This document shows positions 2,403-64,000 of a DNA stretch of 64,000 bases, one piece after another. Made by a program: the position numbers and the translations under genes. The notes beneath the pieces are model-generated. The model saw nothing but the letters and a program-made list of their open reading frames with translations, was not told the DNA's origin and did not search any database. This DNA is from Octopus sinensis (Eukaryota): the NCBI RefSeq assembly GCF_006345805.1, contig NC_043014.1, positions 15,934,001 through 15,998,000 of the forward strand, written 5' to 3'. Positions within the stretch are counted from its first letter, which is position 1, and the number at the start of each line of letters is the position of its first letter.

Positions 2403-2427
2403 ACTCTATGTCATCTTTCATTAGCTC

Positions 2428-3660: not shown

Positions 3661-3699
3661 ATTTGCATTGTTGTGTATGCCTCATTTTTTTTTCGGTTG

Positions 3700-19800: not shown

Positions 19801-22800
19801 TCAACTTCATCTTGTCTGTACATATCATTCTCAAGAAGATTTAACTCTTTCTAGTTGGTGGATGACTATGTAGTGTCTCTTTGGTATCATCATAACTCGA
19901 CTATCAAGACTGTTCCACTTCGTAACATCAACAAATAGAGTCAAAATATCTAATTGATTTGATGACAATTTCATAATTACATATTTAAACAGAGGTAACA
20001 ATAGTAGAAAAGTACCCCATGAAGTTGGCACTAATCAATAGATTACAGGATTCATCACAATTGTTTTCTACTGACCTCAGTTTACTGCTTAATGCTGCTT
20101 CTTACTGTAGCAAGTTGCAGGTTGAAGATATCATGAGGCTGACATGTTCCATCCAAACTGATGCTCTCTCTCTGGAACATTTCATAAGTCTTCACTCACA
20201 TATTCTCTATTGAAGTCATCACCAGTGTTTTGTAAAGGTTGTTCCAGCACACAATTACCAATCAATTTATAGATGTTTCATCAAGCAGATGCTATTAATT
20301 TCCACTAATGTTCTGTCATGTTATCAATTTCTAATGTATGCTCCATCATCTGTCAATTTCCATTTATGATTCGTAACTCACAAGTTTCCTGTAGATGATC
20401 TGTTACCAGCTTGCAATCAGATATGTACAAGCTTCATTTTACAATTGCCAAATGCATATATGCTGTTATTGTACATAACGCCAGTTGACTATTAAAATTA
20501 TCTTTGAGATTCCTATATAACTGAAAATCAATCAAGCAAAAACTGCTTCTGATTTATGAAAGATAGTACATCTTGTGCTGAACACTGAATGTCTTTATCT
20601 CCATTTCACTGTCTCTTATATTGGCCTTGCCTATGCAAGATCATTCAATGTAAACATTAAGAGTCATCATATAAATTCATGATACTACACACTTCCAGGG
20701 TTATGTAGAAGACACTGTTCTTACTTTACCACTGTCAAAAGAAGTTCAGAGATACTAATGAAATTGGAAATGAATGTCACCAGCTTCCATTAAACATTTT
20801 GTCATATTCATCACTAGCTTCTATTAAATGGTCCATCATAGTTGCCACCACTAGTTGTCATCAGCTTCTGTTTGCAGTATGATAGTTGTCTTGATTTTAT
20901 GCACAATTACAGTTCTCACCAACTTCAATCAGCTGCTTCACTAGTTTGTCCCCAGTTTCCAGTAGGTATTTCACAACACAGCCACCAATCTTGAGATGAT
21001 TCGCGAAGACACTTGCTACCAGTTTCTTGTCAACGATGTTCCACCACGTAGTTGTCACCAGCTGTGTCAATTATAGATATCCTCATAAATTCTCTTTCAC
21101 AATCCATGGATTTTTCTTTTCTTTTCACATCTGAAGTTCAGCAGTTGATAATCATTGTTGTAACACAGTAAACACCTGGTACCAGATACACAAGTTCCCA
21201 CACCAAGACATGGTATTTGCAAAAGAAAATATCTGAAAAGAAAAAAAAAACTCACCGCTTCTTTCAAGCTTACAAATCAGCACTGATGTGCCACAGTCTC
21301 TTTAACATATAAATCTCTCAGATGTTCAAAGCAATCATCAACAATCATTAGACATTGCCATTGTATGTAGAAATACTGTTTTACATATTACAAACTGATT
21401 GGCTAAGATCAGTCACATATAGAAAATCAAACAAAACCTACTTCCACTTCTTGTCCCTCAAGTCACCAATGGTAAGCAGCAACCTTAGATACCTCAGGAT
21501 AGTGTTATTTTCATCAGTTTTCACCAGCTTCCAAAAGATGGTCCACAGATGCCACCAACTTCTTTCATGTTCTGCCAGTTTCCTCAAGTTTCTTGTTAGT
21601 TACATACACATTCAATTTTGTAGATACCAATAGCCTGAAAATAAAGTAAAACAAACCTCCGCTTCTTTTTGCTTCACAAGTCACCACTCAGTCACAGGGC
21701 TATCATCAGATTCTGCTCTATGCTTCCATAGTCTTCATGCAGTCACAACTTCTCTGCTCCATATTCCATACTTATCTATAGTTGCACATGTTCCACCAAT
21801 TGAAATAAGCAGCCATTAGATGATATACTATTATCACCAGCCTCCTTGAATGTTCCATCAGTCATCTCTAGTTTGTTAGTCACATGACCAGTCACTTTTG
21901 TAAATTCATGGATGCTGAATATTGATCTGGTACCAATAGCATGAAAATGAAGTAAAACAAACTTCCACTTTCATCAGAAGCTCCATTGAGATTTGCTACC
22001 AGTTTCCATTACACAACTCACTAACCACCAGTACGTGGTCTGTTTCCCACCAAATGCACCACAATCTTTACTAACTTCCATCAGATGCTCCAATTGAGAT
22101 TTAGCAGCAGTTTCCATTTCGATTGTCAAAGACTACCAGTTTTCATCTAATATTTCACCACAAATTCTGCCGAGGTCGACTTTGCCGTTCATCTTTTTGG
22201 GGGTCGATAAATTAAGTACCAGTTGCATATTGGGGTTGATGTAATCGACTCCCCCACCAATTTTGGGGCTATGTGCCTAGAGCAGAAAATATTTCACCAC
22301 AATTTTTACCATCTTCTATCAAATGTTTTGTTGCAGTTGGCACTAGCTCTCATTAGACCAGTTGGATTGCTTCATCATATTGTCATCAGTATGAAGATGT
22401 TCCACTATTTAGTTTTAACCAATTTTTTGTTGATGTTCTACCACACAGTTGTCACCAGCTTTGTCAATTATTGATGTGACCCACATTTTCACTTTGACTA
22501 TCATTTCATTTTTTTTTTTCTTCATTTCATTTAGTTTCACCTCACGAGCTGTGGCTATGCTGGGGCACTGCCATATCAGTTGATCTTATTTTTCTATAAC
22601 TCTCCACATGCATAGTTCATCAGCTGACAGCCACTCTTGCTGCACACTAAACATTTGGTACCAAATACACAAGTTTCCACACAATAACAAGGTATTTATA
22701 AAAGTAAATACAAGCGAAAACCCCACCTCTTCTTCCAGTTTCACAAATCATCACCAGCTATCACATATGTTGGACACTTGACATCAGTAGTATGTGGAAA

Positions 22801-25800
22801 GTCTCTTGTTTTATATATCAATACTTGACTGCTAAGCATTATTCAAATGATAATAAACCTGAAAATGAAACAGAACATACCTCCACTTCTTGTTTCTCAG
22901 GTCATCATCAAGCTACAACTGTAGATACCTCAATGCAGGGCCATCATAAGGTTGGTATTCATTTTCAGATGCACATATTTCACCACAATTGTTACCATTT
23001 TCCATTTGGTGCATCACAGTCATTAGATGTTTTGTTCTCATCATCAGTTTCATTTGGCTGTTTCATCACAGTTAATTATTTCCAATCACTGTTGTTAATA
23101 TGTAGCTGCTAATGATCTGATACAAATAACCTGAAAATGAAGCAAAACAAGCCTCCACTTTTGTTTCACAGGTCATCACACAGCCTTAGATAGCACAGTT
23201 GTCACCAGCCTCTATCAGATGCTCCATCAGTATAGGACCATTATAAAGCTGGTATTAATCTTTAGTTGCACATATCCCATCCTGCTGAGATGTGTCAAAA
23301 TTAGATCCTCTATTGTTGTCATCAGCTTCCTTTGGATGTTTCATCAGTCATCTCCAGTTTCTTGTCGATTCCACATTCACTTTCTTTAATGTGTAGATAA
23401 CCTGAAAATGAAGCAAAAATGTACCTCCAATTGCTTCTGCTGCCAGCTTCCACTAGACATTCCAGCACAGTTCTCATTAGCTTCCATCAGATGTTTTATC
23501 TCAGTCAGTACACTGCTTCATCACAAAGTTGCCACCAGTTTTGTCAATTACTGAGATGCCAAAGAGGTCCTTCATGAGTGTAGTAAGTACCTTTCATCAT
23601 ATTCAATCACAATTGCCACCAGCTTCCAATTCCATGTTCAACAGCATCCATTATTTATCACAGGTCGTCCTTAGATTTTCCACCATACAACTGTCACCAG
23701 CTTCCATTGAATATACCACTTTGATCACCAGCATATAATAAGATATTCCAGCTCCTTCACACTATAATCAGTAACCAGATCTTCCTTCACAAAGTTGTCA
23801 CCAGCTTCATTAATTATGGATGTCAACACCTTCACTTTCACCATCTGTCAATTCTGCTGCACACCAAACACCTGGTACTAGACATTTGAGTACCATTCAA
23901 TGACAGGATAACTGCAACAGAAACTAGCTGAAAAGAAAATCTCACCACCTCTTTCAATCTCACAAATAAGCAATGATGTGCCAGTCTCTTCAATGCAAAA
24001 AGGTTGTCTCAAATGTTCAGATCACCAGCCAACATATATGATGTTGAACACTAGACATCACTCTGCTATAAGGAAATTCTTTTGTTTTACATATCTGTTG
24101 ACTGTCAAATCGTTGCATTACAATAATCCTGAAACTGCAACAAAAAAACCCCATTTCTTGTCTCTCAGGTCACCAGATAGTCGACTGTTATCACCAGATT
24201 CCATTAAACGTTCCACTGTTGTCACTGACATGTCATTTGCTTCCTTTGCATGTTGTAGTGTAGTTGTCAGTCACACACACATTCACTTCTGGTAAACAGG
24301 GGGATACCAGCAATTGATCAGATAATCTGTAAATGAAGCAAAACATACCTCCACTTTTTGTATCATAGGCCAATCTGTCAGACATCACTTTAAGATATTC
24401 CATGACGCTAGTTTCTATTAGATGCTCCATCACAGTTGTTCATAAGAATGTATCAACTTCCCTTGGATGTTCCATCAGTCATCACCAGTTCTGACATGCA
24501 TCTGTACATTCACTTTTGTTAATAAGAGGGTCCCATGATTGATAAGATGTCAACAACCTGAAAGTGATGCAAATAATACCTCCACATCCGTTTATTGCAC
24601 AGGCCAGTCTGTTAGACACAACTTTAAAATATTCCACGACACTTGCCACAAGTTTTCTGTAGATGCTCTTCTAAGATTTCACAAGGTTCCACTGGATGGC
24701 CTATCACAGTTGCTTTCATTAGATATTCTGTCAAATTAATCACCAGCTTACAATAGACATTCCATCTCAGTTGTCAAGACCTTCCAGATATCCTACCGCA
24801 ATGTCAACTTTCCAATACAGATGTCACCAGCTTCAATTGCACATTCTAGTAAAGTTCTCATTAGCTTTCATCAGATAATCTGCCATAGCTGTCACCAACT
24901 TTCATTCCATACTCCATCACAAGTATCCATTACTTATTGTGTTACACAACTGTCCTCAGAGATGTACATCACAGTTGTGGCCACTTTCCTTTCAGATATG
25001 TTCCATCAGTTTTCAATGGCTTCCATTAGGTATACCACCGCATTCATCACCAACTTCTAATAAATATTCTATCCCACTTTTCAACATAGTTGTCAGTTTT
25101 GTCAATTACAGATGTCATCCTCATATATTCACAATCAATCCTTTCTCTTTCTCTCACATGTATAGTTCAGCAGTTGACAACCGTTGTTACACAAACATCT
25201 GGCACCAGATACATGCAATGACAGGATATCTGCAAAAGAAAAATTCACTTCTTTGAAAATTCCAGGTTTTCCACAACTGTCATCAGCTTCCTTTGGACAT
25301 CTAATCCATTATTAGCAGTTCTTTTCAGTTGCATGCACATTCACTTTCACTAATATGTGATTGATCAGCTACCAATAACCTGAAGCTGAAGCAAATCATA
25401 CCTCCACTTCTTCCTCTCAGTCAATTACAACTTTTAGGATACTTAACACAAGTTTCCATTTTTTGTTTCACAAAGTCATCACGTTCATTAGACAGCCTGT
25501 TGCATTTGTCACTAGCAACGATTCCATGTCCTTCATATGGCAGTCATTATTTACCATGTAACACAGTTGTCGTCAATGTTCTAAAACAGAGCCATTACAT
25601 TTTCTTTTCAGATATGTTAAACCAGCTTCCTGTAGATTGCTTCATCATACTGTCATCAGTAGCCAGATATTTCACCAAAAACTGTCACCATTTTCCTTTG
25701 AAAGATGTTCCATGTGAATGTCAGTTTCTTCAATTATGTCACTATTAGAATTCCACTTTTCTCTTCTTCTCTCAAATGAATAGTCCAGCAGTTTATGTTT

Positions 25801-26413
25801 TATACAATACAATAACCACCTGGTACCAGATACAGTCACTGAATAGGAACTTTTGTATCTGTAATAAAAAACATCTAAAAACAAATCTCACTTCTTTCAA
25901 TCTCCCAAGCCAGTTTCCATTTCATGGTCATCACATTTGCAATCAACTTTCATCAGATGTCCAACCACTGCTGTCAGATCATCAGTTTCTATTAACTGTC
26001 CTGCCAGTTGCCACCAACTCTATACCAGATGACCTACCATAACTGTTACTAGTTTCCATTGCACTTATGGACAGACACATTAGATATCAAAGAGCCTAAA
26101 AATGAAGCAAAACAAACCACTTCATATCTCCCAGCTCAGCAGTCAGTCAACAACTGTGGATGTCTAAAGACAGAGTCATCATAACTTTGGTAATAATCAT
26201 CGGTTGCAACAAGCTTTCATTAAATGTTCCATCACACAGTTGTTATCAGTTAATAGTCAATGATAAATGTCATCCTCAGCAAGAAGAGAAAATACATAAA
26301 AAGAGCCTGCTAATCTCCAGATGTTCAATCACATTTCTCATCAGTCACCAGATGTTCCATCATGGCCACCATCAAGTCAAGAGATGTTCCATCAGTTGCC
26401 ACTATCAGTCACG

Positions 26414-26704
26414 AGATGTTCCATCACTGCCACCATCAGTGTCCAGATGTTCCACCACTGCCACCATCAGTGTCCAGATGTTCCACCACTGCCACCATCA
26501 GTGTCCAGATGTTCCACCACTGCCACCATCAGTGTCCAGATGTTCCACCACTGCCACCATCAGTGTCCAGATGTTCCACCACTGCCACCATCAGTGTCCA
26601 GATGTTCCACCACTGCCACCATCAGTGTCCAGATGTTCCACCACTGCCACCATCAGTGTCCAGATGTTCCATCACTGCCACCATCAGTGTCCAGATGTTC
26701 CATC
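26414..26704. repeat. 31-bp tandem array (CAGATGTTCCACCACTGCCACCATCAGTGTC), ~9 near-identical copies
   Basis: Directly visible. Confidence 0.95.
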
Positions 26705-26989
26705 AGTTGCCACCAGTCTCCTGATGCACCATCACAGTTGCCATATGTTTCATCACTATTGCATTCAGTCTCCAGATGCTGCATTGCAGTTGCCAGCCTC
26801 TAGATGCTCAATCATTGTTGGTGCCAGTCTCCAGATACACTACCAGTCTCTAGATGTACCATCACACATCACCAGTTGGTTGTCAATTATAGATGTCATC
26901 CTTATCTGCAAAAGAAAATATCTGAAAGCAAGACTCACCAGTTTCCATTAGATGTTTCAATGCTGTTGCCATCAGTCCCTAGATGAACC

Positions 26990-28135
26990 ATCATAGTTGC
27001 CACCAGTCTCCAGAAATTCCATCACAGTTGTCACCAATCTTCAGACATTCCATCAGTTGCCACCAGTCTCCAGATGTTCCTTCACAGTTGCCACCAGTCT
27101 TCAGACGTTCCATCACAGTTGTCACCAGTCTTCAGATGTTCCATCACAGTTGCCACCAGTCTCCAGATGTTCCATCACAGTTGTCACCAGTCTTCAGACG
27201 TTCCATCACAGTTGTCACCAGTCTTCAGACGTTCCATCACAGTTGTCACCAGTCTTCAGATGTTCCATTACAGTTGCCACCAGTCTTCAGACGTTCCATC
27301 ACAGTTGTCACCAGTCTTCAGACGTTCCATCACAGTTGTCACCAGTCTTCAGATGTTCCATTACAGTTGCCACCAGTCTTCAGACGTTCCATCACAGTTG
27401 TCACCAGTCTTCAGACGTTCCATCACAGTTGTCACCAGTCTTCAGATGTTCCATCACAGTTGCCACCAGTCTCCAGATGTTCCATCACAGTTGTCACCAG
27501 TCTTCAGATGTTCCATCACAGTTGCCACCAGTCTTCAGACGTTCCATCACAGTTGTCACCAGTCTTCAGATGTTTCATCACAGTTGTCACTAGTCTTCAG
27601 ACGTTCCATCACAGTTGTCACCAGTCTTCAGATGTTCCATCACAGTTGCACCAGTCTCCAGATGTTCCACCACAGTTGCCACCAGTCTCCAGATGTTCCA
27701 TCACAGTTCTCCCCAGTCTTCAGATGTTCCATCACATTTGCCACCAGTCTCCAGATGTTCCATCACAGTTGTCACCAGTCTTCAGATGTTCCATCACAGT
27801 TGCCACCAGTCTCCAGACGTTCCATCACAGTTGTCACCAGTCTCCAGATGTTCCATCACAGTTGCCACCAGTCTTCAGACATTCCATCAGTTGTCACCAG
27901 TCTCCAGATGTTCCATCACAGTTGCCACCAGTCTCCAGATGTTTCATCACAGTTGTCACCAGTCTTCAGACGTTCCATCACAGTTGTCACCAGTGTACAG
28001 ACGTTCCATCACAGTTGTCACCAGTCTTCAGACGTTCCATCACAGTTGTCACCAGTCTCCAGACATTCCATCACAGTTGCCACCCATTTCCAAACGTTCC
28101 ATCATGGTTGCCACCAGTCTCCAGATGATCCACAC
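26990..28135. repeat. 31-bp tandem array (CAGAYGTTCCATCACAGTTGYCACCAGTCTY), ~36 copies
   Basis: Directly visible; all three + frames are open with a 31-aa period. Confidence 0.95.
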
Positions 28136-28592
28136 AGTTGCTACTAGTTTCCTTTAGATATAAAAAAGCCTGAAAATGAAGCAAAATGAGCCTTGTCTTT
28201 CTTCTGAAGTGACCAGTCCTTTGGATGTTTACAACAGGTTAAATTTGTACCATTCTATCACAATTGCCAACAGTTTTCTTTAGATGTCCTGTCACACATT
28301 TTACCAATTTCCAGTCAATGTTCAGTCCACCAGAAGCAGTTTCCATTGTATATTCCATCAGAAAATCATCAAGGAGATTCTACCAAATAGTTATCACCAA
28401 CTTCTCAGGAATGTTCCATCACACAGGTGTCACCAGTCAATTGTAGATGTCATCCTCATCTGCAAATGAAGAACCTGAAAGAAAGACTTGCTAGTTCTCA
28501 TTAGATGTTCCATCACAGCTGCCACCAGTTTCCAGATGTTCCTTCACAACTTTCATTTAGCATTCCGGGGATGCCACCAGCTTCCATTGGAT

Positions 28593-29991
28593 CGGCTTGC
28601 AACTCGGCACCTAGAGGGGCAAGTCGATGCCTTCGGATAGCGTCATGGGATGTTGGACGGAGGGCCCGGTTAAGCTGCTAGGGGTTTGGTTTGACCTGCA
28701 TAGTCAAGAACTGGTCTTGGTGGTGGCTATCCTTGAAAGGGTGGGCGGAGGTGGCCAATGTGTTTATCGCATCGGTCATCATTTACTGCCTAACCGTCGT
28801 GCCCTGTCCCGCTTTGTGGTTGAGCAAGCTGGAGAGGCAGATCTTCCGCTTTTTGCGGAAGGGCACCACTGCTCTTGTGAGGCGTTCTATCTGCTGCCAG
28901 AAGCCGTTGAATGGAGGATTGGGGATGCCTTGGCCGTTGATGCGCAAACATGCACTGAGGTTCAGGCATCTCTGGCTACTCCTGAATGGTGAACAGGTGT
29001 GGTCTCCGTTCGTGAAATGGATGTTTCCCAGGTTCACTAGTTTTAGTGGACAAGAAAGCTGGTTCTTTCGTAGATCGAGGTTGGGTATATGGTTTACGGA
29101 GTGCCGTAAAGCACTCCTACAGTTCCATCACTCAGGTAATGCTAGCGGTTTTGGTACCACCACATTTTTCTATAGCAGGTTGGTAGAGGCTGGGAACAAC
29201 GATACTCTAGGTCTTGGAGATAACCAGTTAGACAGTCTGTTCCGAAGGACGTTCGGGCCAGGTTGTTTGGATAATTTCCCAAAATCCCTGGCCTGGCAAT
29301 GTTACCGAGGAGCCTTACCCATTCGGGATAAGCTCGCACGACATGGTCAAACTACCACTGCCGACTGTCCAAGATGCGGACGGGATAGGAAACTGTCCTG
29401 CATGCTATTGTTCAGTGTCCTGGAGTGTCTGAAGTGTGGGCTTATGCAGAACATGTCAGGTTTGGGAAGAGTACAGCTGTCGTCTGAGTCAATTGTAAAA
29501 ATTGACCTGCCAGATTTCCTCACGAAAGAAAGTAACCAATGTTTTCTCGCTGTAGTAGCAATAGCAAAAGAGGTGGTCTGGAAGTCACGAATGAAAGGTT
29601 TAGCGACAGGCAACCTCATCTCCGGTCTCGGGTTGGTGAGATATTTTATCTTCCACTTTAAAAGGAAGTTGAGGCTGGAGAGAAGATGCCATTCAAAGAA
29701 AATGTTCAAAGAAAGACGGTTGCATGTTGCGAGGGTGCTGGGAATGAAAGATTCCTCGTGAACATGTCATAAGTCTGCATACAAAAGTTTCAGTAGGAGA
29801 ATGGGGCTTGTAGGGTTGGAGCGTAAGCCATCTCTTTGCTTCATTTCATGTTTGTATTTCGTCCTTGTTGTATCTCATTCGATTTCATTATATTTTGTAA
29901 AATTTTAAAAGTCATATAATCATTGTGTGTCTGACCCCAATCAGGCTGTATTGTCCCCCTCTATGTTTGGGCCCTTGTGGCTAATAAAGAA
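28593..29991 (+). mobile_element. 5'-truncated L1/Tx1-clade LINE (ORF2 C-terminal part and 3' UTR) with 7-bp TSD
   Basis: GLQLGT*RGKSMPSD..GPVKLLGVWF; LVRRSICCQKPLNGGLGMP; SLAWQCYRGALPIRDKL; CPRCG zinc-knuckle region. AATAAA at 29983-29988. ATTGGAT duplicated at 28586-28592 and 29992-29998. GC and strand composition differ from the array. Confidence 0.92.
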
Positions 29992-32609
29992 ATTGGATGT
30001 TCTACCACAGTTGTCACAAGTCCTCATTTTATGTTTCAGGACAGCTACCACCAGTCCCCAATAGAAGTTTCATCACAGATGACATACACATGTGCAAAAA
30101 AAATATCTGAAAAGAATTCCTATTCTTTCAGTCTCACAAATTGGCAATGACATGCTAGTCTTTGATAAATGAATATCTTCCAAATGTCCAAATCAATAGT
30201 CATCACAATTCATATCACTGTGCTTTGTGGAGATTTTGTTAACAGCTTTCATCAGGTGTTCTACCACACTTTCAACCAGTCTTTGGTATGTGTTCCATCA
30301 CAATTGTCACCAGTCTCCAGATGATCCCTTAGTTGCCACCCATGTCTGATTCATTAGGTTATCAAAAAGCCTGAAAATGAAGCAGAATGAGTCACTTCTT
30401 TCATCCAATGTCATCAGTCCTGATGATATTTGTAGATGTTTAAGGTAGGTCCATTATAATCATTAGATGCATTCCACTGTAGTTGCATAAAACTTCCATT
30501 ATATGTCCTGACATCTATTTTTACCAATTTCCAGTAGATAATTTTCTATTAGCTAAGACCAGCTTTCACACTGTTTTCCACGGGACAATTTTCTTTAAGG
30601 AGACACAGTCACAATCTTTTCACAATACAATTATCACCAATTTGATGTCAATTATAGATATCATCCTCACCTATAAAAAAAGGACTCAAAGAAACAACTC
30701 GCCTCTGGTTTCATAAAATGACTATGATTTGCCACAATCGCTTCAATGTACATAGATCTGCCTGATATGTTGAGATCATCAGCAATCACGTTTTACAATA
30801 GACATTAATGTGCTGTGTGCAGATCCATTTGTTAGCAGTTTTTATTAGGCATTTCAGAGCCATCACAGCTGTCATTGTGTATTCAATCAGTTACCACCAA
30901 TCTCCATTGGAAGGTCCACCACCTGGTTGCTAATCTGCATTAGCTGTTGCCCTAGTTACCAATCTCCATCATAGTTGCCACCAGTCTCCAGATGTTCCAT
31001 CAAGTCTCTATCATCAATCTCCAAATGATATACCAGCTTCTTGTCAGATTCATTAGATATCTAAAGACCCGAAAATGAAGCAGAATGAGCTACTTTCTGA
31101 GTCACCAGTCCTGTCATATTTGCTGATATTTATGGCAAATCAATCATAACACTGGAAATATTCATTAGTTGTATTCCATCACAACTGCCAACAACTTTCA
31201 TTACATGTTATATCACCCATTTTATCAGTTACCAACAGATAATGTTCAATTAGTCAGCAGCAGCTTCCACATCACCATTACCCTCAGGGGGTTTCCCCAC
31301 ATATACTTGCCACCAATCTGTCAGAAATTTTCCATTACAGTTACCACCAGTTGGTCATCATTACAGATGTCACTTTCAACTGCAAAAGAAGCTACCTGTA
31401 AAAATAAATGCACCAGTCTCCATTAGATGCTCTATCACAATTGCCACCAGCCAACTGCTCCAATGACAACTTCCACCAGTCTCCAGATGCTCCACTACAG
31501 TTCATTAAGCATTTTAGAGACGTCACCAGCCTTCCTTATGTGTTCTATCAAAATTGACATCAGTCTCCATCTGTTCCATCGCAGTTGCCACCAGATTCCA
31601 TCAGATGTTGCATCGCAGTTGCCAGCAAATTCCATCAGATGTTGCATTGCAGTTTCAATCATATGTTGCATCACAGTTGCCACCAGTTACCTTCGGATGT
31701 TGCATCGCAGTTGCCACCGGCCTTCAGATGATACACCACAGGTGTCACCGGCCTTCAGATGATACACCACAGGTGTCACCAGTTTCATGTTGGACACATT
31801 ACAGATGTAAAAACAAAAGTCTGAAGATGAATCAACATGCACCATTTCTTTCCTTCTAAGCCACCAGTCTTGGTGACACTTGTAGATGTTCATGTCAGGG
31901 CAATCATAACTTTGGTAAGAATTAGTTGCATTCCATCTTAACTACCAACAGTTTTTATTAGATGTTCTGTTGGTCAGCACTAGCTTCCACCAATTTGTCA
32001 CAATTGCTTCCATCCAACAATTATCGCCTGTCGATTGTCAATTGCAGATGTCATCCCCATCTGCAAAAGAAAAACACTTCTTTCCACCTCACAAATAGCC
32101 AGTCTCTTCAATATATAAAGCTGTCTCAGATGTTCACAGATTATCATGTTTCACAATAAACATCACTATGCTTTGCTTTTCTAAGCAAATTACACTAGTC
32201 ATTTCAGTGCTGTCATCAGCTCCTATTAGATGTTCTACCAGTCTCCATCACAAGTGCCATTACATTTGGCATCAGTAACCAGATGTTCTATCATTTTGTT
32301 TCCACCATTTTCCAAATTTCCCATAAACGTAGACAATCCATAACACATGTCATTAGTCGCCATTAGAAGTTTCACCACACATATTATTCTCATAGGCAAA
32401 GGAAAGTACATAAAAAGAACTATTCTTTCAGTCACACAAATCAGCAATGACATGCCAGGCTTAACAAAATATAAAGCTGCCTCAGATGTTCAAATCATAG
32501 CAGTTATCACATTTCACAACAGATATTAGTGTGTTATGTGCAAATTCTTTTGATTGCAGCTATCATTAGGCTTTCCGGAGCTGTCACCAGGTTCATTAGA
32601 TGTCCCATC

Positions 32610-34440
32610 ATAGTCGCCACCAGTCTCCACAAGATGTACCATCATAGTTGCCACCAGCCTCCATTAGATGTTCCAACACAGTTGCCACAAGCCTCCATTA
32701 GATGTTCCAACACAGTTGCCACAAGCCTCCGTGAAATGTACCATCAGTTTCCACAAGATGTTCTATCACAGTTGTCACCAGTCTCCACAAGCTGTTCCAT
32801 CGCAGTTGCCAGCCTCCGTGAGATGTACCATCACAGCTGCTACCAGCCTCCATCAGATGTACTATCACCGTTGCTAACAGCCTCCATCATATGTAGCCTT
32901 ACGGTTGACACCAGTCTCAGTAAGATGTACCATCACAGTTGCCACCAGCCACTGTGAGATGTATCATCAGTTTCCACCAGCCTCCATCAGATGTACAATC
33001 AAAGTTGCCACCAGTCTCTGTGAGATGTACCATCATAGTTGCCACCAGCCTCCACAAGATGTTCTATCACAGTCGCCACCAGCCTCCACAAGATGTACCA
33101 TCACAGTTGCCACCATCCTCCGTGAGATGTACCATCAGTTTCCACCAGCCTCCATCAGATGTTTCATCACAGTAGCCACCAACCTCCGTGATATGTACCA
33201 TCAAAGTTGCCACCAGCCTCCACCAGATATTCCATCACACATTCCACCAGCCTCCATTAGATGTTCCAACACAATAGCCACCATCCTCCAGGAGATGTAC
33301 CATCATAGCTGCCATTAGTCTCCACAAGATGTTGCATCACAGTCATCACCAGTCTACATGAGCTGTTCCATCACAATCGCCACCAGCCTCAGTGAGATGT
33401 ACCATCAGTTACCACCATCCTTCATCAGATGTACCATCAAAGTTGATACAAACCTCTGGGAGATGTAACATCACAGTTGCCACCAGCCACTGTGAAATGT
33501 ACCATCACAGTTGCCACCAGCCTCTGTGAGATGTACCATCAGCTTCCGTCAGATGTACCATCACAGTTGCCACCAGCCTCTGTGAGATGTACATCACAGC
33601 TGCCACCAGCCTCCATCAGATGTTTCATCACAGTAGCCACCAACCTCCGTGAGATGTACCATCAGTTTCCACCAGCCTCCATTAGATGTTCCAACACAGA
33701 TGCCACCAGCCTACATCAGATGTACCATCAAAGTTGCTACCAGTCTCTGTGAAATGTACCATCACAGTCGCCACCAGCCTCCACCAGATGTTCTTTCACA
33801 CTTTCCACCAGCCTCCAACAGATGTACCATCAAAGTTGCCACCAGCCTCAATTAGATGTTCCAACACAGTTGCCACCATCCTCCGGGAGATGTACCATCA
33901 CAATTGCCACCAGCCTCCATCAGATGTACTATCACCGTTGCCAACAGCCCCCATCAGATGTACCATCACAGTTGCCACTAGTCTCCACAAGCTGTTCCAT
34001 CAGAGTCGACACCAGTCTGCACGAGCTGTTCCATCACAGTCGCCACCACCTCTGTGGGATGTACCATCACAGTTGCCACCAGCCTCCATCAGATGTACCA
34101 TCACAGTTGCCACCAGCCTCCATCAAATGTTCCAACACAGTTGCCACCATCCTCCGGGAGATATACCATCACAGTTGCCGCCAGTCTCCATGAGATGTTC
34201 CACGACACTTGCCACCAGTATCCACGAGATGTTGCATCAGTTGCCACCAGACTCTGCGAGATGTACCAACACAGTTGCCACCAGCGTCTGCAAGATGTAC
34301 CAACACAGTTGCCACCAGCCTCCATCAGATGTTCCAACTGTCGCCACCAATCCCCACAAGCTGTTTCCATCACAGTCGCCACCCGTTTCCATGAGATGTT
34401 TCATCACAGTTACCACTAGAGATTTTCCACCACAGTTGCC
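32610..34440. repeat. 34-bp (with 31-bp variants) tandem array (CAGATGTACCATCACAGTTGCCACCAGCCTCCAT)
   Basis: Directly visible; moderately diverged copies. Confidence 0.9.
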
Positions 34441-53800: not shown

Positions 53801-56800
53801 AAGCCTGAAAATGAAGTAAAATGACCGACCTCTCTCTTTCCAAGTTATTGGTCCTGTCAACACTTGATGTCATCCTCATTTGCAAACGAAAATACTTGAA
53901 AAAAGAAAGTGATCAGTTTCCAGATGTTACATCACGGTTGGTACCCATCTCTAGACATTACATCATGGTTGCCACCAGTCTCCATAAGATTCTATTACAA
54001 TTGCCACCAGTGTCCATCAGATGATTCTATTACAGTTGCCACCAGTCACTATCACATGTTCATCTGTTGCTACCAGTCACCATCAGCTGCTCCAGCTTTT
54101 GCTACCAGTCACCATCAGATGCTCCACCTGTTGCTACTAGTCACCATCAGATGCTCCATCTGTTGCTACCAGTCACCATCGGTTGCTCCATCTGTTGCTA
54201 CCAGTCACCATCAGTTGCTCCATCTGTTGCTACCGCTCACCATCAGATGCTCCATCAGTTGCTACCAGTATTATCTCGAACTCCATGAAAATTGCTAACA
54301 GCCTTTTCTACCAATTTCCAGTAAACAAATGTTCTATTAGTAGGCACCATCTTCTACTGTATTATCCTTCAGACTATTTTCTTCATGAAGATTCAACCAA
54401 AGAGTCATCACCAATGTCACAAATCTTTTATCATAGAGCTGTCTCCAGTTAGTTGTCAATTATAGATGTCATCATTTTCTGCAAAAGAAAACCTCAGAGA
54501 AGAAAAACTCACCTCATCATTCAGCTTCACAAATCAGCATAGTCACTGCAATATACAAAGTTGCCTCAGACACTCAAATCATCATCAGTCGTCAAGTTTC
54601 TTTGCAAGCATCATTGAGGTACTTGGAGTTTCTCTTGTGTTACCACCAGTCACCAACCGTCAAATACTGGACAAATGAGAATAGGCCTGAAATTCAAGCA
54701 AAATCTACCTCCACTTCTATCATGAGCTTGGGATCATCACTATTTGCATGTTCCATAACAGCTGTCACTAGATGTTCAACAGCTTCTACCATTTTCTTTT
54801 AGATGGTCTATCGCAGCTACCAAAGAACCCAGTAGATGTTCTGTCAGTTGTTACAAGTGTCCATTAGATGCTCCACCAGATACCAGTCTCCATTAGAAGT
54901 TATGAAGTCGTCGCAAATCTCTTGTTTGATGTATTAAATACCAAAAAGGCTAGATATAAAGCAAAACAAACCACTTCTTTCCTCAAAAGTTGCCCAACAT
55001 TTGCAGATGTCCAAACGCATGTTCACAGTAGCTACCATAATAATCATCAGTTGAATTCCATCGCAAATATTCCATCCAAGGTTGTCACCAGTTGGCTGTC
55101 AATTGCAGATGTCATCCACATCTACAGAGAAAAAAAATACACAAAGAAAAACTCACCCCTTCTTTCAGCCTCACGATTCAACAATGATGAGCCACATTCT
55201 CTTCAACATATAAAGCTGTCTCGAAGTTCACAAATCATCATGCTTCACATTGTCCTATCAAAGTTGCCAGTCTCCATCAGATGTGCTAAAGTTGCAATCC
55301 ATCTCCAAATGTTCAAGACTTGCCATCAGTCTCCAAATGTTCAGTCAACAACTCTCCAGATGATCCACCATAGTTGCCATTTCTTCCTTGTCCAACTTAT
55401 TAAAGATGAAAATGTCTGAAAACAAAGCAAAAGAAACCACTTCTTTCCTCCAAATTTACCAGTCTTGTTGACATTTGTAGATGATCAAGTCAGGGCAGTA
55501 ATAACTTTGGTAAGAATTAGTTGCATTCCATCACAAGTGCAAACAGATTCCATTAGATATTCTACTGGTCCACACTAGCTTCCTCCAATTCATCATGAAT
55601 CTTCTATCACATAGTTATCACAAGTTGGTTGTCAATTGTAGATGTGATCCTTATCTGCAACAGAAAATATATCAAAAGCAAATCTCACTCTCTTCTTTCA
55701 ACCTAATTGGTGATGAGCAAGTCTCTTCGATACATGAAGCTGTTCCAGAAGTCCAGATCTTATGTCTCACAGTAGTCACCTCTAAGCTATGCAGTTATTC
55801 TTTTCTAAGCAGCTCTAATTAGGTATGCAAACCTGTCACCAGAATCCATTAGTTGCTCTGCCAGTTGATACCAGTCTGTCATATGCTCCATCTCTGTTGC
55901 ATCCAGTGTCCATCAGATGGTTTGTCACCATTTCCATTACTTGTTCCACTACAACTTCCGATATCTATTAGACGCTCCACCACAAATCCCATTGGTAATC
56001 TTATGTTCCATCAATTTGCATATGCTCGATCACAGCAGCCATCACTCTTCTTCACAGATACCACCAGCTTCTTGTCTGATTCATTAGGTATTGAAAAGCC
56101 TGAAAATGAAGTAAAATGAGCTACCTCTTTCCTCCTAAGTTATTGGTCCTTTCAAAATTTGATGTCATCTTGATTTGCAAACGAAAATACTTGAAAAAAG
56201 AAATTGATCAGTTTCCAGATGTTACATCACTCACGGTTGGTACCCATCTCTAGACATTACATCATGGTTGCCACCAGCCTCCATACAATTGCCACCAGTG
56301 CCCATCAGATGATTCTATTAGTTGCCACCAGTCACTATCATATGCTCCATCAGTTGCTACCAGTCACCATCAGCTGCTCCATCTGTTGCTACCAGTCACC
56401 ATCAGATGCTCCATCTGTTGCTACCAGTCACCATCAGATGTTCCATCACAGTTGCTCCCCATCTCCATCAAATGTTCAAAAGATGCATCCAGTTGTCTCA
56501 ACAATTACTAAACAAAATAGCATGAACATGAAAGTAAGCGAACCACTTCTTGCCACCAAACTCATCAGCTCTGGTTGTAATCTGGACTTGCATTCCATCA
56601 AAATTGCTAACAGCCTTTTCTACCAATTTCCAGTTAATAAATATTCTATTAGCATGTACCATCTTCTATTGTATTATCCATCAGACTATTTTCTTCATGA
56701 AGATTCCATCGGAGTCACCACCAATGTCACAAATCTTCCATCACACAGCTGTCTCCAGTTAGTTGTCAATTACAGATGTTATCCTTTTCTGCAAAAGAAA

Positions 56801-59800
56801 ACCTCAGAAAAGAAAAACTCACCTCATTCAGCCTCACAAATCAGCAATGATGAGCCATAGTCTCGACAATACACAAAGTTGCTTCAGACACTCAAATAAT
56901 CATCCACCATCAAATTTCACTGTAAGCATCGTTGAGGTACTTGGGAGTTTCTCTTGTGTTACCATCACTCATCAACCGTCAAATACTGGACAAATGAAAA
57001 TAGGCCTGAAATTCAAGCAAAATGTACCTCCACTTCTATCATGAGCTTGGCAATATCACCGTTTGCACATTCCATTACAGCTGTCACTAATGTTCCACGA
57101 TTTTCTGTTAGACATTCTATCGCAGCTTCCAAAGATTCCAGTAGATGTTCTGTCAGTTGTTACAAGTGTCCATTAGATGCTCCACCAGATACCAGTCTCC
57201 ATTAGAAGTTATGAAGTCGTCGCAAATCTCTTGTTTGATGTATTAGATACCAAAAAGGCTAGATATAAAGCAAAACAAACCACTTCTTTCCTCCAAAGTT
57301 GCCCAACATTTGCAGATGTCCAAACGCATGTCCACAGTAGCTACCATAATAATCATCAGTTGAATTCCATCGCAAATATTCCATCCAAAGTTGTCACCAG
57401 TTGGCTGTCAATTACAGATGTCATCCACATCTACAGAGAAAAAAAATACACTAAGAAAAACTCACCCCTTCTTTCAGCCTCACGATTCAACAATGATGAG
57501 CCACATTCTCTTCAACATATAAAGCTATCTCAAAGTTCACAAATCATCATGCTTCACAATGTCCTATCAAAGTTGCCAGTCTCCATCAGATGTGCTAAAG
57601 TTGCCATCCATCTCCAAATGTTCAAGACTTGCTATCAGTCTCCAAATGTTCAATCAGTCAACACCACTCTCCAGATGAAACACCATAGTTGCCATTTCTT
57701 CCTTGTCCAACTTATTAAATATGAAAATGTCTGAAAACAAAACAAAAGAAACCACTTCTTTCTTCCTAATTTACCAGTCTTGTTGACATTTGTAGATGAT
57801 CAAGTCAGGGCAGTAATAACTTTGGTAAGAATTAGTTGCATTCCATTAGATATTCTACTGGTCCACACTAGCTTCCTCCAATTCATCATGGATCTTCTAT
57901 CACATAGTTATCACAAGTTGGTTGTCAATTGTAGATGTGATCCTTATCTGCAACAGAAAATATCTCAAAAGCAAATCTCACCTCTTCTTTCAATCTAATT
58001 GGTGATGAGCAAGTCTCTTCGATACATGAAGCTGTTCCAGAAGTCCAGATCTTTATGTCTCACAGTAGTCACCTCTAAGCTATGCAGTTATTCTTTTCTA
58101 AGCAGCTCTAATTATGTATGCAAACCTGTCACCAGAATCCATTAGTTGCTCTGCCAGTTGATACCAGTCTGTCATATGCTCCATCTCTGTTGTATCCAGT
58201 GTCCGTCAGATGGTTTGTCACCATTTCCATTAATTGTTCCACTACAACTTCCGATATCTATTAGACGCTCCTCCACTGATGCCATTGGTAATCTGATGTT
58301 CCATCACAGTTGCCATCAATTTGCAGATGCTCCATCACTCTTCTTCACAGATACCACCAGCTTCTTGTCTGATTCATTAGGTATTGAAAAGCCTGAAAAT
58401 GAAGGAAAATAAGCGACCTCTTTCCTCCTAAGTTATTGGTCCTTTCAAAATTTGATGTCATCCTCATTTGCAAACAAAAATACTTGAAAAAAGAAAGTGA
58501 TCAGTTTCCAGATGTTACATCACGGTTGGTACCCATCTCTAGACATTACATCATGGTGGCCACCAGTCTCCATAAGATTCTATTACAATTGCCACCAGTG
58601 CCCATCAGATGATTCTATTAGTTGCCACCAGTCACTATCATATGCTCCATCAGTTGCTACCAGTCACCATCAGCTGCTCCATCAGTTGCTACCAGTCACC
58701 ATCAGATGCTCCATCTGTTGCTACCAGTCACCATCAGATGTTCCATCACAGTTGCTCCCCATCTCCATCAAATGTTCAAAAGATGCATCCAGTTTGTCTC
58801 ACCAATTACGTAAACAAAATAGCATGAACATGAAAGTAAGCGAACCACTTCTTGCCACCAAACTCATCAGCTCTGGTTGTAATCTGGACTTGCATTCCAT
58901 CAAAATTGCTAACAGCCTTTTCTACCAATTTCCAGTTAATAAATATTCTATTAGCATGTACCATCTTCTATTGTATTATCCATCAGACTATTTTCTTCAT
59001 GAAGATTCCATCGGAGTCACCACCAATGTCACAAATCTTCCATCATACAGCTGTCTCCAGTTAGTTGTCAATTACAGTTGTTATCCTTTTCTGCAAAAGA
59101 AAACCTCAGAAAAGAAAAACTCACCTCATTCAGCCTCACAAATCAGCAATGATGAGCCATAGTTTCGACAATACACAAAGTTGCTTCAGACACTCAAATC
59201 ATCATCCACCATCAAATTTCACTGTAAGCATCGTTGAGGTACTTGGGAGTTTCTCTTGTGTTACCATCACTCATCAACCGTCAAATACTGGACAAATGAA
59301 AATAGGCCTGAAATTCAAGCAAAATGTACCTCCACTTCTATCATGAGCTTGGCAATATCACCGTTTGCACAATCCATTACAGCTGTCACTAATGTTCCAC
59401 GATTTTCTGTTAGACATTCTATCGCAGCTTCCAAAGATTCCAGTAGATGTTCCGTCAGTTGCCACAAGTTTCCATTGGATGCTCCACCAGATACCAGTCT
59501 TCACCTAGAAGTTATGAAGTCGTCGCAAGTCTCTTGTTTGATGTATTAGATACCAAAAAGCCTAGGAATGAAGCAAAACAAACCACTTCTTTCCTCCAAA
59601 GTTGCCAGTCAACATTTGCAGATGTTCAAACGCATGTTCACAGTAGCTACCATAATAATCATCAGTTGAATTCCATCGCAAATATTCCATCCAAAGTTGT
59701 CACCAGTTGGCTGACAATTGCAGATGTCATCCACATCTACAGAGAAAAAAAATACACAAGAAAAAACTCACCCCTTCTTTCAGCCTCACGATTCAACAAT

Positions 59801-62800
59801 GATGAGCCACATTCTCTTCAACATATAAAGCTGTCTCGAAGTTCACAAATCATCATGCTTCACATTGTCCTATCAAAGTTGCCAGTCTCCATCAGATGTG
59901 CTAAAGTTGCCAACAGCCTCCAGATGTTTCACGACTTGCCATCAGTCCCCAAATGTTCAATCAGTCGACACTACTCTCCAGATGAAACACCATAGTTGCC
60001 ACTAGTCCCTTGTCCAACTACTTAAATATGAAAATGTCTGAAAACAAAGCAAAAGAAACCACTTCTTTCCTCCAAATTTACCAGTCTTGTTGACATTTGT
60101 AGATGATCAAGTCAGGGCAGTAATAACTTTGGTAAGAATTAGTTGCATTCCATCACAAGTGCAAAGAGATTCCATTAGATATTCTACTGGTCCACACTAG
60201 CTTCCTCCAATTCATCATGAATCTTCTATCACATAGTTATCACAAGTTGGTTGTCAATTGTAGATGTGATCCTTATCTGCAACAGAAAATATCTCAAAAG
60301 CAAATCTCACCTCTTCTTTCAATCTAATTGGTGATGAGCAAGTCTCTTCGATACATGAAGCTGTTCCAGAAGTCCAGATCTTTATGTCTCACAGTAGTCA
60401 CCTCTAAGCTATGCAGTTATTCTTTTCTAAGCAGCTCTAATTAGGTATGCAAACCTGTCACCAGAATCCATTAGTTGCTCTGCCAGTTGATACCAGTCTG
60501 TCATATGCTCCATCTCTGTTGCATCCAGTGTCCATCAGATGGTTTGTCACCATTTCCATTACTTGTTCCACTACAACTTCCGATATCTATATAGACGCTC
60601 CACCACAAATCCCATTGGTAATCTTATGTTCCATCAATTTGCATATGCTCGATCACAGCAGTCATCACTCTTCTTCACAGATACCACCAGCTTCTTGTCT
60701 GATTCATTAGGTATTGAAAAGCCTGAAAATGAAGTAAAATGAGCTACCTCTCCTCTTTCCTCCTAAGTTATTGGTCCTTTCAAAATTTGATGTCATCTTG
60801 ATTTGCAAACGAAAATACTTGAAAAAAGAAATTTATCAGTTTCCAGATGTTACATCACGGTTGGTACCCATCTCTAGACATCACATCATGGTTGCCACCA
60901 GCCTCCATACAATTGCCACCAGTGCCCATCAGATGATTCTATAGTTGCCACCAGTCACTATCATATGCTCCATCAGTTGCTACCAGTCACCATCAGATGC
61001 TCCATCTGTTGCTACCAGTCACCATTGGATGCTCCATCTGTTGCTACCAGTCACCATGAGATGCTCCATCTGTTGCTACCAGTCACCATGAGATGCTCCA
61101 TCTGTTGCTACCAGTCACCATCAGCTGCTCCATCTGTTGCTACCAGTCACCATCAGATGCTCCATCTGTTGCTACCAGTCACCATCAGATGTTCCATCAC
61201 AGTTGCTCCCCATCTCCATCAAATGTTCAAAAGATGCATCCAGTTTGTCTCACCAATTACGTAAACAAAATAGCATGAACATGAAAGTAAGCGAACCACT
61301 TCTTGCCACCAAACTCATCAGCTCTGGTTGTAATCTGGACTTGCATTCCATCAAAATTGCTAACAGCCTTCTCTACCAATTTCCACAGTTAATAAATATT
61401 CTATTAGCATGTACCATCTTCTATTGTATTATCCATCAGACTATTTTCTTCATGAAGATTCCATCGGAGTCACCACCATGTCACAATCTTCCATCATACA
61501 GCTGTCTCCAGTTAGTTGTCAATTACAGATGTTATCCTTTTCTGCAAAAGAAAACCTCAGAAAAGAAAAACTCACCTCATTCAGCCTCACAAATCAGCAA
61601 TGATGAGCCATAGTCTCGACAATACACAAAGTTGCTTCAGACACTCAAATCATCATCCACCATCAAATTTCACTGTAAACATCGTTGAGGTACTTGGGAG
61701 TTTCTCTTGTGTTACCATCACTCATCAACCGTCAAATACTGGACAAATGAAAATAGGCCTGAAATTCAAGCAAAATGTACCTCCACTTCTATCATGAGCT
61801 TGGCAATATCACCGTTTGCACATTCCATTACAGCTGTCACTAATGTTCCACGATTTTCTGTTAGACATTCTATCTATCGCAGCTTCCAAAGATTCCAGTA
61901 GATGTTCTGTCAGTTGTTACAAGTGTCCATTAGATGGCTCCACCAGATACCAGTCTCCATTAGAAGTTATGAAGTCGTCGCAAATCTCTTGTTTGATGTA
62001 TTAGATACCAAAAAGGCTAGATATAAAGCAAAACAAACCACTTCTTTCCTCCAAAGTTGCCCAACATTTGCAGATGTCCAAACGCATGTCCACAGTAGCT
62101 ACCATAATAATCATCAGTTGAATTCCATCGCAAATATTCCATCCAAGGTTGTCACCAGTTGGCTGTCAATTGCAGATGTCATCCACATCTACAGAGAAAA
62201 AAATACACAAAGAAAAACTCACCCCTTCTTTCAGCCTCACGATTCAACAATGATGAGCCACATTCTCTTCAACATATAAAGCTATCTCAAAGTTCACAAA
62301 TCATCATGCTTCACAATGTCCTATCAAAGTTGCCAGTCTCCATCAGATGTGCTAAAGTTGCCATCCATCTCCAAATGTTCAAGACTTGCTATCAGTCTCC
62401 AAATGTTCAATCAGTCAACACCACTCTCCAGATGAAACACCATAGTTGCCATTTCTTCCTTGTCCAACTTATTAAATATGAAAATGTCTGAAAACAAAAC
62501 AAAAGAAACCACTTCTTTCTTCCTAATTTACCAAGTCTTGTTGACATTTGTAGATGATCAAGTCAGGGCAGTAATAACTTTGGTAAGAATTAGTTGCATT
62601 CCATTAGATATTCTACTGGTCCACACTAGCTTCCTCCAATTCATCATGGATCTTCTATCACATAGTTATCACAAGTTGGTTGTCAATTGTAGATGTGATC
62701 CTTATCTGCAACAGAAAATATCTCAAAAGCAAATCTCACCTCTTCTTTCAATCTAATTGGTGATGAGCAAGTCTCTTCGATACATGAAGCTGTTCCAGAA

Positions 62801-64000
62801 GTCCAGATCTTTATGTCTCACAGTAGTCACCTCTAAGCTATGCAGTTATTCTTTTCTAAGCAGCTCTAATTAGGTATGCAAACCTGTCACCAGAATCCAT
62901 TAGTTGCTCTGCCAGTTGATACCAGTCTGTCATATGCTCCATCTCTGTTGTATCCAGTGTCCATCAGATGGTTTGTCACCATTTCCATTAATTGTTCCAC
63001 TACAACTTCCGATATCTATTAGACGCTCCTCCACTGATGCCATTGGTAATCTGATGTTCCATCACAGTTGCCATCAATTTGCAGATGCTCCATCACTCTT
63101 CTTCACAGATACCACCAGCTTCTTGTCTGATTCATTAGGTATTGAAAAGCCTGAAAATGAAGGAAAATAAGCGACCTCTTTCCTCCTAAGTTATTGGTCC
63201 TTTCAAAATTTGATGTCATCCTCATTTGCAAACGAAAATACTTGAAAAAAGAAAGTGATCAGTTTCCAGATGTTACATCACGGTTGGTACCCATCTCTAG
63301 ACATTACATCATGGTGGCCACCAGTCTCCATAAGATTCTATTACAATTGCCACCAGTGCCCATCAGATGATTCTATTAGTTGCCACCAGTCACTATCATA
63401 TGCTCCATCAGTTGCTACCAGTCACATCAGATGCTCCATCAGTTGCTACCAGTCACCATCAGCTGCTACATCTGTTGCTACCAGTCACCATCAGATGCTC
63501 CATCTGTTGCTACCATTCACCAGTCACCATCAGATGTTCCATCACAGTTGCTCCCCATCTCCATCAATTGTTCAAAAGATGCATCCAGTTTGTCTCACCA
63601 ATCTACGTAAACAAAATAGCATGAACACGAAAGTAAGCAAACCACTTCTTGCCACCAAACTCATCAGTTCTGGTTGTAATCCGGACTTGCATTCCATCAA
63701 AATTGCTAACAGCCTTCTCTACCAATTTCCAGTTAATAATATTCTATTAGCATGTACCATCTTCTATTGTATTATCCATCAGACTATTTTCGTCATGAAG
63801 ATTCCATCGGAGTCACCACCAATGTCACAAATCTTCCATCATACAGCTGTCTCCAGTTAGTTGTCAATTACAGTTGTTATCCTTTTCTGCAAAAGAAAAC
63901 CTCAGAAAAGAAAAACTCACTCATCATTCAGCCTCACAAATCAGCAATTGAGCCATAGTTTCGACAATACACAAAGTTGCTTCAGACACTCAAATCATCA
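44850..64000. repeat. Higher-order repeat of 2.2-2.5 kb units (8 units), with 4.75-kb and 6,994-bp super-periods
   Basis: The anchor ttttCTGCAAAAgaaaacctcag occurs at 44955, 47485, 49658, 52110, 54479, 56789, 59091, 61542, 63887. Pairs 45899/52893 and 47485/54479 are both 6994 apart. Pairs 56789/61542 and 58146/62904 are ~4755 apart. Confidence 0.9.
51535..51770. repeat. 32-bp tandem array (CAGATGCTCCATCTGTTGCTACCAGTCACCAT); copy-number-variable paralogs near 47065, 49170, 54060, 56345, 58640, 60965, 63405
   Basis: Directly visible; period 32 (51629, 51661, 51693). Confidence 0.92.

Follow-up and report, generated by a model that had tools for sequence, protein, structure and literature searches.

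In a 64,000-nucleotide (nt) stretch of the Octopus sinensis genome (contig NC_043014.1, positions 15,934,001 to 15,998,000; hereafter the window, whose own numbering is used throughout), the minus strand carries dozens of splice-like donor-acceptor pairs that lie only about 22 nt (class A) or about 33 nt (class B) apart, which we refer to as cassettes. A sequence-only reading of the window had left four options for these cassettes: real ultra-short introns, non-coding exons that cannot join their neighbors, unspliceable landing pads for U1 and U2AF on a long nuclear RNA, or inherited sequence without function. We find the last option best supported, whereas real ultra-short introns do not fit a locus that has no reading frame and belongs to an octopus. 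The cassettes are probably the short T-rich linkers of a large non-coding tandem repeat that runs in a single orientation, that is, inherited repeat sequence. The founding unit would already have had a polypyrimidine run between GT and AG ends, and copying would have multiplied them. That founder may have been either an exon, duplicated with stubs of a few bases from each flanking intron, or exon-like by chance, the linker being a splice-like T-rich spacer. If the minus strand were transcribed, the class B donors and the acceptors of both classes could bind U1 and U2AF. A donor and an acceptor 22-34 nt downstream lie closer together than any pair that an animal spliceosome is known to join, their distance being below the known minimum. 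If the linkers are only inherited repeat, the locus is a caution that one amplified founder motif can mimic dozens of independent signals.

Linker cassettes in a single-orientation tandem repeat

The tandem-repeat domain is strand-asymmetric and non-coding. It extends from about 9.3 kilobases (kb; position ~9,311) to the end of the window and runs past it, with a repeat coverage of at least 54 kb. From ~9,311 onward, the plus strand is rich in C, with a GC skew between -0.23 and -0.42, the insertion of a long interspersed nuclear element (LINE) at 28-30 kb excepted. Array periods determined with Tandem Repeats Finder are 44 nt at 9.3-19.7 kb and 31, 32 and 34 nt at 21-64 kb, with higher orders in addition, and the 44-nt and 31-34-nt monomers have words in common, such as GCAACTGTGA and TGGTGACAA (minus-strand sense).

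To count the cassettes, we used nhmmer profiles built from the examples quoted in the sequence-only reading and iterated the search. This yielded 63 class A and 62 class B copies (125), all on the minus strand, between positions 21,214 and 63,941. With these profiles, no cassette was detected on the plus strand, in the flank at 1-9.3 kb or in the 44-nt repeat domain at 9.3-19.7 kb. All 12 quoted cassettes were recovered with the same position, sequence, length and strand, and the estimate by eye of more than 20 copies per class, some of them degenerate, was borne out by the 63 and 62 copies, among which are GC, GG and AT...AA forms. The cassette-bearing part of the array (21,211-64,000, minus strand), delimited by the matches, their order and their spacing, thus consists of 125 linker cassettes between purine-rich segments. 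Class B and class A cassettes alternate in most of the array, and the segments between them have a median length of 249 nt (range 52-2051 nt), with 87% at or below 500 nt. Class A is constant in length (22 nt in 53 of 63 copies). Class B is looser, with 34 nt in 29 of 62 copies, 31-35 nt in most and a range of 14-45 nt.

The recurrence of these elements is far beyond chance, as judged by dinucleotide-preserving shuffles. With up to two mismatches allowed for this motif, TTTGCTTCATTTTCAGG has 35 matches (0.02 in shuffles), the class B acceptor 25-mer has 26 (0 in shuffles) and the class B donor 21-mer has nine (0 in shuffles), and every one of these matches is on the minus strand. Individual copies illustrate the range, all on the minus strand and with slashes marking the cassette boundaries. 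The 22-nt class A cassette at 22,859-22,880 reads GAG/GTATGT...TTTTCAG/G and is one of only two class A copies with a good donor, while a typical copy from a young repeat (59,562-59,583) reads GTG/GTTTGTTTTGCTTCATTCCTAG/G, with a weak donor (5/9 on the score given below). A GC-type class A copy at 60,723-60,744 (GCTCATTTTACTTCATTTTCAG) is without a GT donor and has its acceptor-like end intact, a state common to nine paralogous copies. In class B, the 33-nt cassette at 36,938-36,970 reads GAG/GTGAGT...TTTTTGCAG/AT, and the 34-nt cassette that opens each young repeat unit (61,542-61,575) contains an internal 15-nt direct duplication (GAGTTTTTCTTTTCT / GAGGTTTTCTTTTGC). A degenerate AT...AA class B copy (60,803-60,836), in which both splice-like dinucleotides are gone, persists in eight paralogous copies.

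Much of this number was generated by copying. When cassettes with 60-nt flanks were clustered at 85% identity, about 33 independent class A lineages and about 32 class B lineages remained; the cassettes are therefore copies by descent and not 125 independent events. Self-BLAST revealed higher-order units of 2.3-2.45 kb from about 45 kb to the window end. This young higher-order-repeat block (45,011-64,000, minus strand; self-BLAST and MAFFT identity matrix) resolves into eight units of 2.17-2.53 kb: units 1-4 at 61,595-63,941, 59,144-61,594, 56,842-59,143 and 54,535-56,841, and units 5-8 at 52,166-54,534, 49,711-52,165, 47,541-49,710 and 45,011-47,540. In the MAFFT matrix, six units (type I) are 93-99% identical to one another. 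The two type II units (52,166-54,534 and 45,011-47,540) are 97.5% identical mutually and about 78% identical to type I. Each unit carries approximately five class A and five class B cassettes, and the cassette lineages within one unit form separate clusters below 85% identity. There is thus an age gradient, with older, diverged copies at 21-45 kb and young copies at 45-64 kb. Inside one repeat unit, a 207-nt direct duplication (45,234-45,647, minus strand; 99% identical) is much younger than the surrounding copies.

By eye, the two cassette classes are related. Both are preceded by GAAAGAAG(T/A)G, and the 22-nt class A sequence has its parallel in the opening 18 nt of class B (GTGAGTTTTTCTTTTCAG), to which class B adds a 16-nt T-rich extension that ends in GCAG and is the counterpart of GCTTTTTG after class A. 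The basic unit would comprise one linker and, ahead of it, a purine-rich stretch of about 100-400 nt that is composed of 31-34-nt monomers. Two linker types, A of 22 nt and B of 34 nt, alternate. The relatedness of A and B and this unit structure suggest that the array grew from monomer to A/B dimer to the 2.3-2.45-kb higher-order repeat, presumably by the usual mechanisms of unequal crossing-over and slippage.

This organization resembles that of higher-order-repeat satellites or macrosatellites of the alpha-satellite type: the array is head-to-tail, in one orientation and non-coding; alternating diverged monomer types are amplified as a multi-monomer unit; young units lie beside older diverged ones; and units (93-99%) are more alike than are the monomers within a unit. 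Unlike in alpha-satellite-type arrays, the octopus monomers are uneven in length, contain nested 31-34-nt arrays and have unit boundaries that look like splice sites.

Quality and constraint of the splice-like signals

Donors were scored by their match to CAG/GTRAGT over nine positions, with 7 or more taken as good. Strict GT...AG ends are present in 36 of 63 class A and 38 of 62 class B copies (74/125) or, counted by lineage, in 19/33 and 15/32, respectively. In the other copies, the 5' end is GC, GG, CT, AC, TT or AT, or else the 3' end is AT, GG or AA. Donors that score at least 7/9 occur in 32 class B copies, where the good donor is GAG/GTGAGT, and in only two class A copies, in which the usual donors are GTTTGT, GTTTCT, GTACAT, GCTCAT and GGTCAT. 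The sequence-only reading had credited both classes with near-optimal U1 and U2AF signals; this is only half right, since it holds for U1 in class B but class A donors are mostly poor. In the cassette domain, the minus strand has 20 strong donor-like 9-mers (at least 8/9) versus 21.8 ± 5.2 in composition-matched shuffles; of these 20, 19 fall within class B cassettes. For acceptor-like sites there is an approximately sevenfold enrichment (68 versus 9.9 in shuffles). There are 26 motifs of the GGTGAGT type on the minus strand and none on the plus strand, a count that is explained by duplication.

To correct for the duplication history, changes per alignment column were counted by Fitch parsimony on a neighbor-joining tree. 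For class A, GT columns had 5.5 changes and AG columns 2.0, compared with 4.5 for the whole cassette, 4.2-7.0 for the adjacent 10 nt and 7.4 for distant flanks. The corresponding values for class B were 3.0 (GT), 5.0 (AG), 5.6 (whole cassette), 4.6-5.4 (adjacent 10 nt) and 8.3 (distant flanks). The cassette and about 10 nt on each side thus change less than the interiors of the segments, a comparison biased toward the cassette in that the interiors are poorly aligned tandem monomers subject to slippage turnover and the copies were ascertained by cassette similarity. Within the cassette block, GT and AG are not special. The young copies agree: among the six type I units, cassette columns had 0.094 changes per column versus 0.099 elsewhere, and the windows around the 5' and 3' splice-like sites were not depleted of changes (P = 0.34-0.62). 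In addition, paralog groups with GC, GG or AT...AA ends persist as whole groups. The proposal that GT and AG are kept above their neighbors was therefore not upheld. Tree-corrected changes at these dinucleotides are about equal to those in neighboring columns, and the parsimony counts, the young copies and the persisting degenerate groups all indicate that GT and AG mutate like the adjacent bases across modules, which is the second half of what the sequence-only reading had named as refuting its proposal.

Coding potential, transcription and alternative explanations

There are several ways in which the cassettes could be more than inherited linkers, the most direct being that they are introns. 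Ultra-short introns are found in ciliates, chlorarachniophyte nucleomorphs and dicyemids, and the cassettes are like these in length (about 15-35 nt) and in their GT...AG ends; the 74 of 125 copies that combine GT...AG with a pyrimidine run, together with the constant 22 nt of 53 of 63 class A copies, speak in the same direction. Unlike the octopus cassettes, those introns interrupt open reading frames (ORFs) in lineages whose introns are short throughout. Octopus is not known as such a lineage, 22-34 nt is below the known animal minimum, many non-GT and non-AG copies have persisted through duplication, and the flanks have no open frame that removal of a cassette would restore. Coding on the minus strand is ruled out by dense stops in every frame (TGA at 38-48, or roughly 45, per 1000 codons; longest ORFs inside the array about 100 amino acids) and by periods of 31, 32, 34 and 44 nt, none divisible by three. 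Inter-cassette lengths modulo 3 (41/43/39) show no frame bias. With dense TGA in all frames, even lengths modulo 3 and non-triplet periods, there is no reading frame to restore. Thus, the cassettes are almost certainly not introns of a gene, and their removal from any transcript as genuine spliceosomal introns is scarcely conceivable. Coding on the plus strand was rejected as well: its ORFs of up to 381 amino acids are without a homolog among 5.8 billion proteins, and their length results from the pyrimidine-rich composition, which leaves the array open in all three frames.

The remaining alternatives suppose that the minus strand is transcribed, and the closest functional precedent that we found is the chicken LL2R array. 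LL2R, the source of a 'lumpy loop' architectural RNA, occupies one locus of about 160 kb, where 446-bp units are arrayed as dimers; its RNA is transcribed from one strand, is rich in predicted donors (more than 3-fold excess) and poor in poly(A) signals, stays at its locus and recruits small nuclear ribonucleoproteins and SR proteins (bioRxiv 10.64898/2026.03.19.712899). The octopus array is likewise a single non-coding array with units of a few hundred base pairs in dimers; its predicted splice sites are confined to one strand, on which poly(A) signals are scarce. Unlike in the octopus array, which is known here from its sequence, transcription and recruitment have been demonstrated experimentally for LL2R; moreover, the octopus array shows no imbalance between donors and acceptors, which form pairs with a spacing of 22-34 nt, and its donor density is that expected from composition. 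A related precedent is the reported chromatin retention of non-coding RNAs driven by a U1 motif (bioRxiv 10.1101/310433) and the nuclear retention also of mRNAs with unpaired 5' splice-site motifs (PMC9074902). The GGTGAGT-type motifs of the octopus array similarly lack a usable intron downstream and are repeated on one strand; the U1-motif effect was demonstrated in mammalian cells, with one motif or a small number of them.

Three features of composition bear on whether there is such a transcript. An AATAAA hexamer (9,289-9,294, minus strand) lies about 15 nt past the abrupt end of the array (~9,310), followed by AT-rich DNA, and would be weakly suggestive of a poly(A) signal if the array were a minus-strand transcription unit. 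Within the array, the minus strand has two ATTAAA hexamers versus about 18 expected and 15 AATAAA versus about 22; on the plus strand, poly(A) hexamers are not depleted. The ratio of observed to expected CpG is 0.06-0.27 throughout the array, compared with 0.55-0.65 for the inserted LINE and the unique flank; this could result either from long-term germline methylation or from a CpG-poor founding monomer. The array also has an excess of TG+CA that matches the low CpG.

The inheritance of the linkers from a founder, which we favor, has to be weighed against a set of observations that count against it. The class B unit resembles a complete minimal intron, with AG/GTGAGT, a possible branch A, a polypyrimidine run and CAG, and its flanks are purine-rich GAAGAAG-type sequence in segments of exon-like length; it is unlikely that such a combination arose by chance in the founder. 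The scarcity of poly(A) hexamers on the minus strand and the AATAAA past the array end are compatible with a long minus-strand transcription unit. The class A acceptor region (TTTTCAGG) is the least-changing part of the unit, with 0-3 changes in each column, and a single change is counted at the +1 G of the class B donor; splicing of class B donors to the class A acceptor that follows would be expected to give this pattern, although it was noticed post hoc in few columns of cassettes that had been ascertained by similarity. Finally, the GT and AG columns of the young copies had 0 changes in 20 versus two expected, a difference of low power (P = 0.14). The hexamer at the array end, the hexamer scarcity and the low CpG could all be explained as properties of an amplified monomer. 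In a test for transcription-linked mutational asymmetry, strand asymmetry among 164 recent substitutions was not significant.

A transcribed RNA, either one that attracts splicing factors or one that undergoes splicing at alternate segments, is, taking the two together, a tentative possibility that we rate clearly below inheritance. The first of these would be a long minus-strand non-coding unit whose RNA carries U1 and U2AF sites that cannot be paired, so that it acts as an architectural RNA or splicing-factor landing pad like LL2R; because the sites are not productively paired, the RNA would be retained at or near the locus and would concentrate splicing factors there. All signals on one strand, the enrichment of acceptor-like sites, 19 of 20 strong donors at homologous class B positions, the depleted hexamers with AATAAA at the array end, the low CpG of the array relative to its surroundings and the published cases of LL2R and U1-motif chromatin retention are consistent with it. 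Nevertheless, such a role is unlikely: donor density is not above the compositional expectation (20 versus 21.8), donors and acceptors are balanced where LL2R has a 3-fold donor excess, site-specific conservation and strand asymmetry of recent substitutions are lacking, and motif scarcity and low CpG can be inherited from the monomer. A broader form of the idea, which we consider quite unlikely, is a minus-strand non-coding unit of more than 54 kb with more than 100 exon-definition units, in which each donor would lie deliberately too close to the next acceptor and the outcome would be either an architectural RNA or alternate-segment products. In the architectural outcome, U1, U2AF and SR proteins would be loaded and splicing would remain incomplete, giving a retained, condensate-forming, LL2R-like RNA, and in the spliced outcome the only joins would be those from a class B donor to the class A acceptor that follows. 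Transcription of the array, if it occurs, would provide an invertebrate counterpart of the tandem-repeat RNAs that gather splicing factors, as well as a natural test of a spliceosome that faces strong sites closer together than it can use.

Splicing at alternate segments would make every second segment an exon of a spliced non-coding gene, with the class B donor joined to the next class A acceptor and the intervening segment plus both linkers (about 150-350 nt) removed as the intron. The 22-34-nt spacing would then merely block the nearest acceptor and lead to combinatorial or alternate-exon products. The counts at individual splice positions fit this model, since the slowest are the class A AG (2 and 2 changes) and the class B GT (1 and 5), while the class A donor (4 and 7) and the class B acceptor (3 and 7) do not differ from background. 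Weak class A donors are what is expected if they are not used, and the segments have exon-like lengths. This comparison is post hoc and involves four columns, the class B donor from -3 to +6 changes at the background rate except at +1, GT is kept in only 19 of 32 class B lineages, and the class A acceptor looks more conserved than it is because the copies were ascertained with profiles; we therefore regard the model as improbable. A known parallel is the steric hindrance between mutually exclusive exons (e.g., alpha-tropomyosin exons 2/3), in which the donor-acceptor distance is likewise below the spliceable minimum; a spacing below the limit of the animal spliceosome means that neighboring segments of the octopus array could not be joined together. 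The tropomyosin-type exons, however, are coding and homologous, number two or a few, share their length and frame and are flanked by constitutive exons, whereas the octopus array has about 125 non-coding segments of 52-2051 nt with no frame and no visible constitutive exons. A further proposal concerns origin only. Antisense A-tails are a known source of sequence resembling 3' splice sites, and the linker could be the antisense of an A-rich tail, or of an A-rich linker, in a retroposon-like unit of the plus strand that was tandemly amplified. The polypyrimidine-plus-AG appearance of the cassettes would then arise as in antisense Alu elements. On the plus strand, the cassette does read A-rich (CTGCAAAAGAAAATATCTGAAAAGAAAAACTCAC). 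We consider this origin very improbable, given that no tRNA-like or other head of a short interspersed nuclear element (SINE) was found, that the cassette is without similarity to the LINE or the long terminal repeat (LTR) element of the window, that no target-site duplications were seen and that the GAG/GTGAGT donor is left unexplained.

Other features of the array and its flank

Some of the inter-cassette segments are filled by monomer arrays identified with Tandem Repeats Finder, all in minus-strand orientation: a 31-nt array at 26,339-28,140 and further arrays at 32,594-34,416 (34 nt), 44,354-44,854 (31 nt) and 60,913-61,198 (32 nt). The 44-nt repeat domain (9,311-19,700, minus strand) spans 10 kb; its higher orders measure 174, 350 and 434 nt, with identities of up to 96%, and its strand bias is that of the 31-34-nt monomers. 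Were a minus-strand transcript made, this domain would be its 3' portion. The heptamer CTGTGAT, which as a match to the K-box and the miR-2-family seed would be a candidate site in a microRNA sponge, occurs 125 times on the minus strand and 0 times on the plus strand of positions 10,000-64,000. There is one per 31-34-nt monomer, mostly at 21,200-46,000 on the minus strand. The 44-nt domain has CTGTGAC and the young repeat CTGATGG in its place, and CTGTGAT is thus not kept across the array.

Several other candidate functions were rejected or found no support. A small nucleolar RNA host-gene cluster, prompted by TGATGA- and CTGA-like words, or another structured RNA was rejected on empty Rfam scans of the array; no Rfam family was found there in gathering-threshold or E-value scans, and ARAGORN found no tRNA or tRNA/SINE head. 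A hairpin that would hide the donor, formed by pairing of GAAAGAAGAG with the T-run, is present in some copies, but the z-scores of class B cassettes are -0.57 to +1.09, and folds of cassettes with their flanks were not more stable than those of shuffles, one class A copy excepted. The monomers had no match in scans of public metagenome contigs, and a literature search turned up nothing specific on octopus satellites or micro-introns. A link to the octopus Z chromosome and the long non-coding RNAs Zmast and Zfest was not established for CM016876.1, the chromosome of assembly GCA_006345805.1 to which the window belongs. The Z chromosome of O. sinensis is linkage group (LG) 20, and neighboring accession numbers weakly place CM016876.1 on LG26-30, i.e., away from LG20.

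The array is interrupted by the 3' part of a LINE (28,400-30,100, plus strand), which lies in the opposite orientation and flips the GC skew locally. This fragment retains an intact ORF of 356 amino acids (28,691-29,761, plus strand), 100% identical to a protein recorded on CM016876.1 at about 15.95 Mb, whose homologs carry RVT_1 and zf-RVT domains and whose closest named relative is from the octopod Argonauta hians. In the 20 kb around this ORF, no gene other than the LINE ORF itself was called. To the left of the array, in the first 9.3 kb of the window, lies a degraded Ty3/gypsy-type LTR retroelement (715-4,559, minus strand) with recognizable gag, reverse transcriptase, RNase H and integrase domains; stops and frameshifts break the frames between and within these domains. 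A (CATA)n microsatellite, found with Tandem Repeats Finder, is also present in this flank. Finally, a 244-nt fragment of 18S ribosomal RNA (rRNA) lies at 5,619-5,862 on the plus strand (Rfam RF01960, 105.6 bits) and covers model positions 1225-1478 only. It is isolated in otherwise unique DNA, shows differences of the CpG-to-TpG type from the usual conserved core and is probably an rRNA pseudogene fragment.

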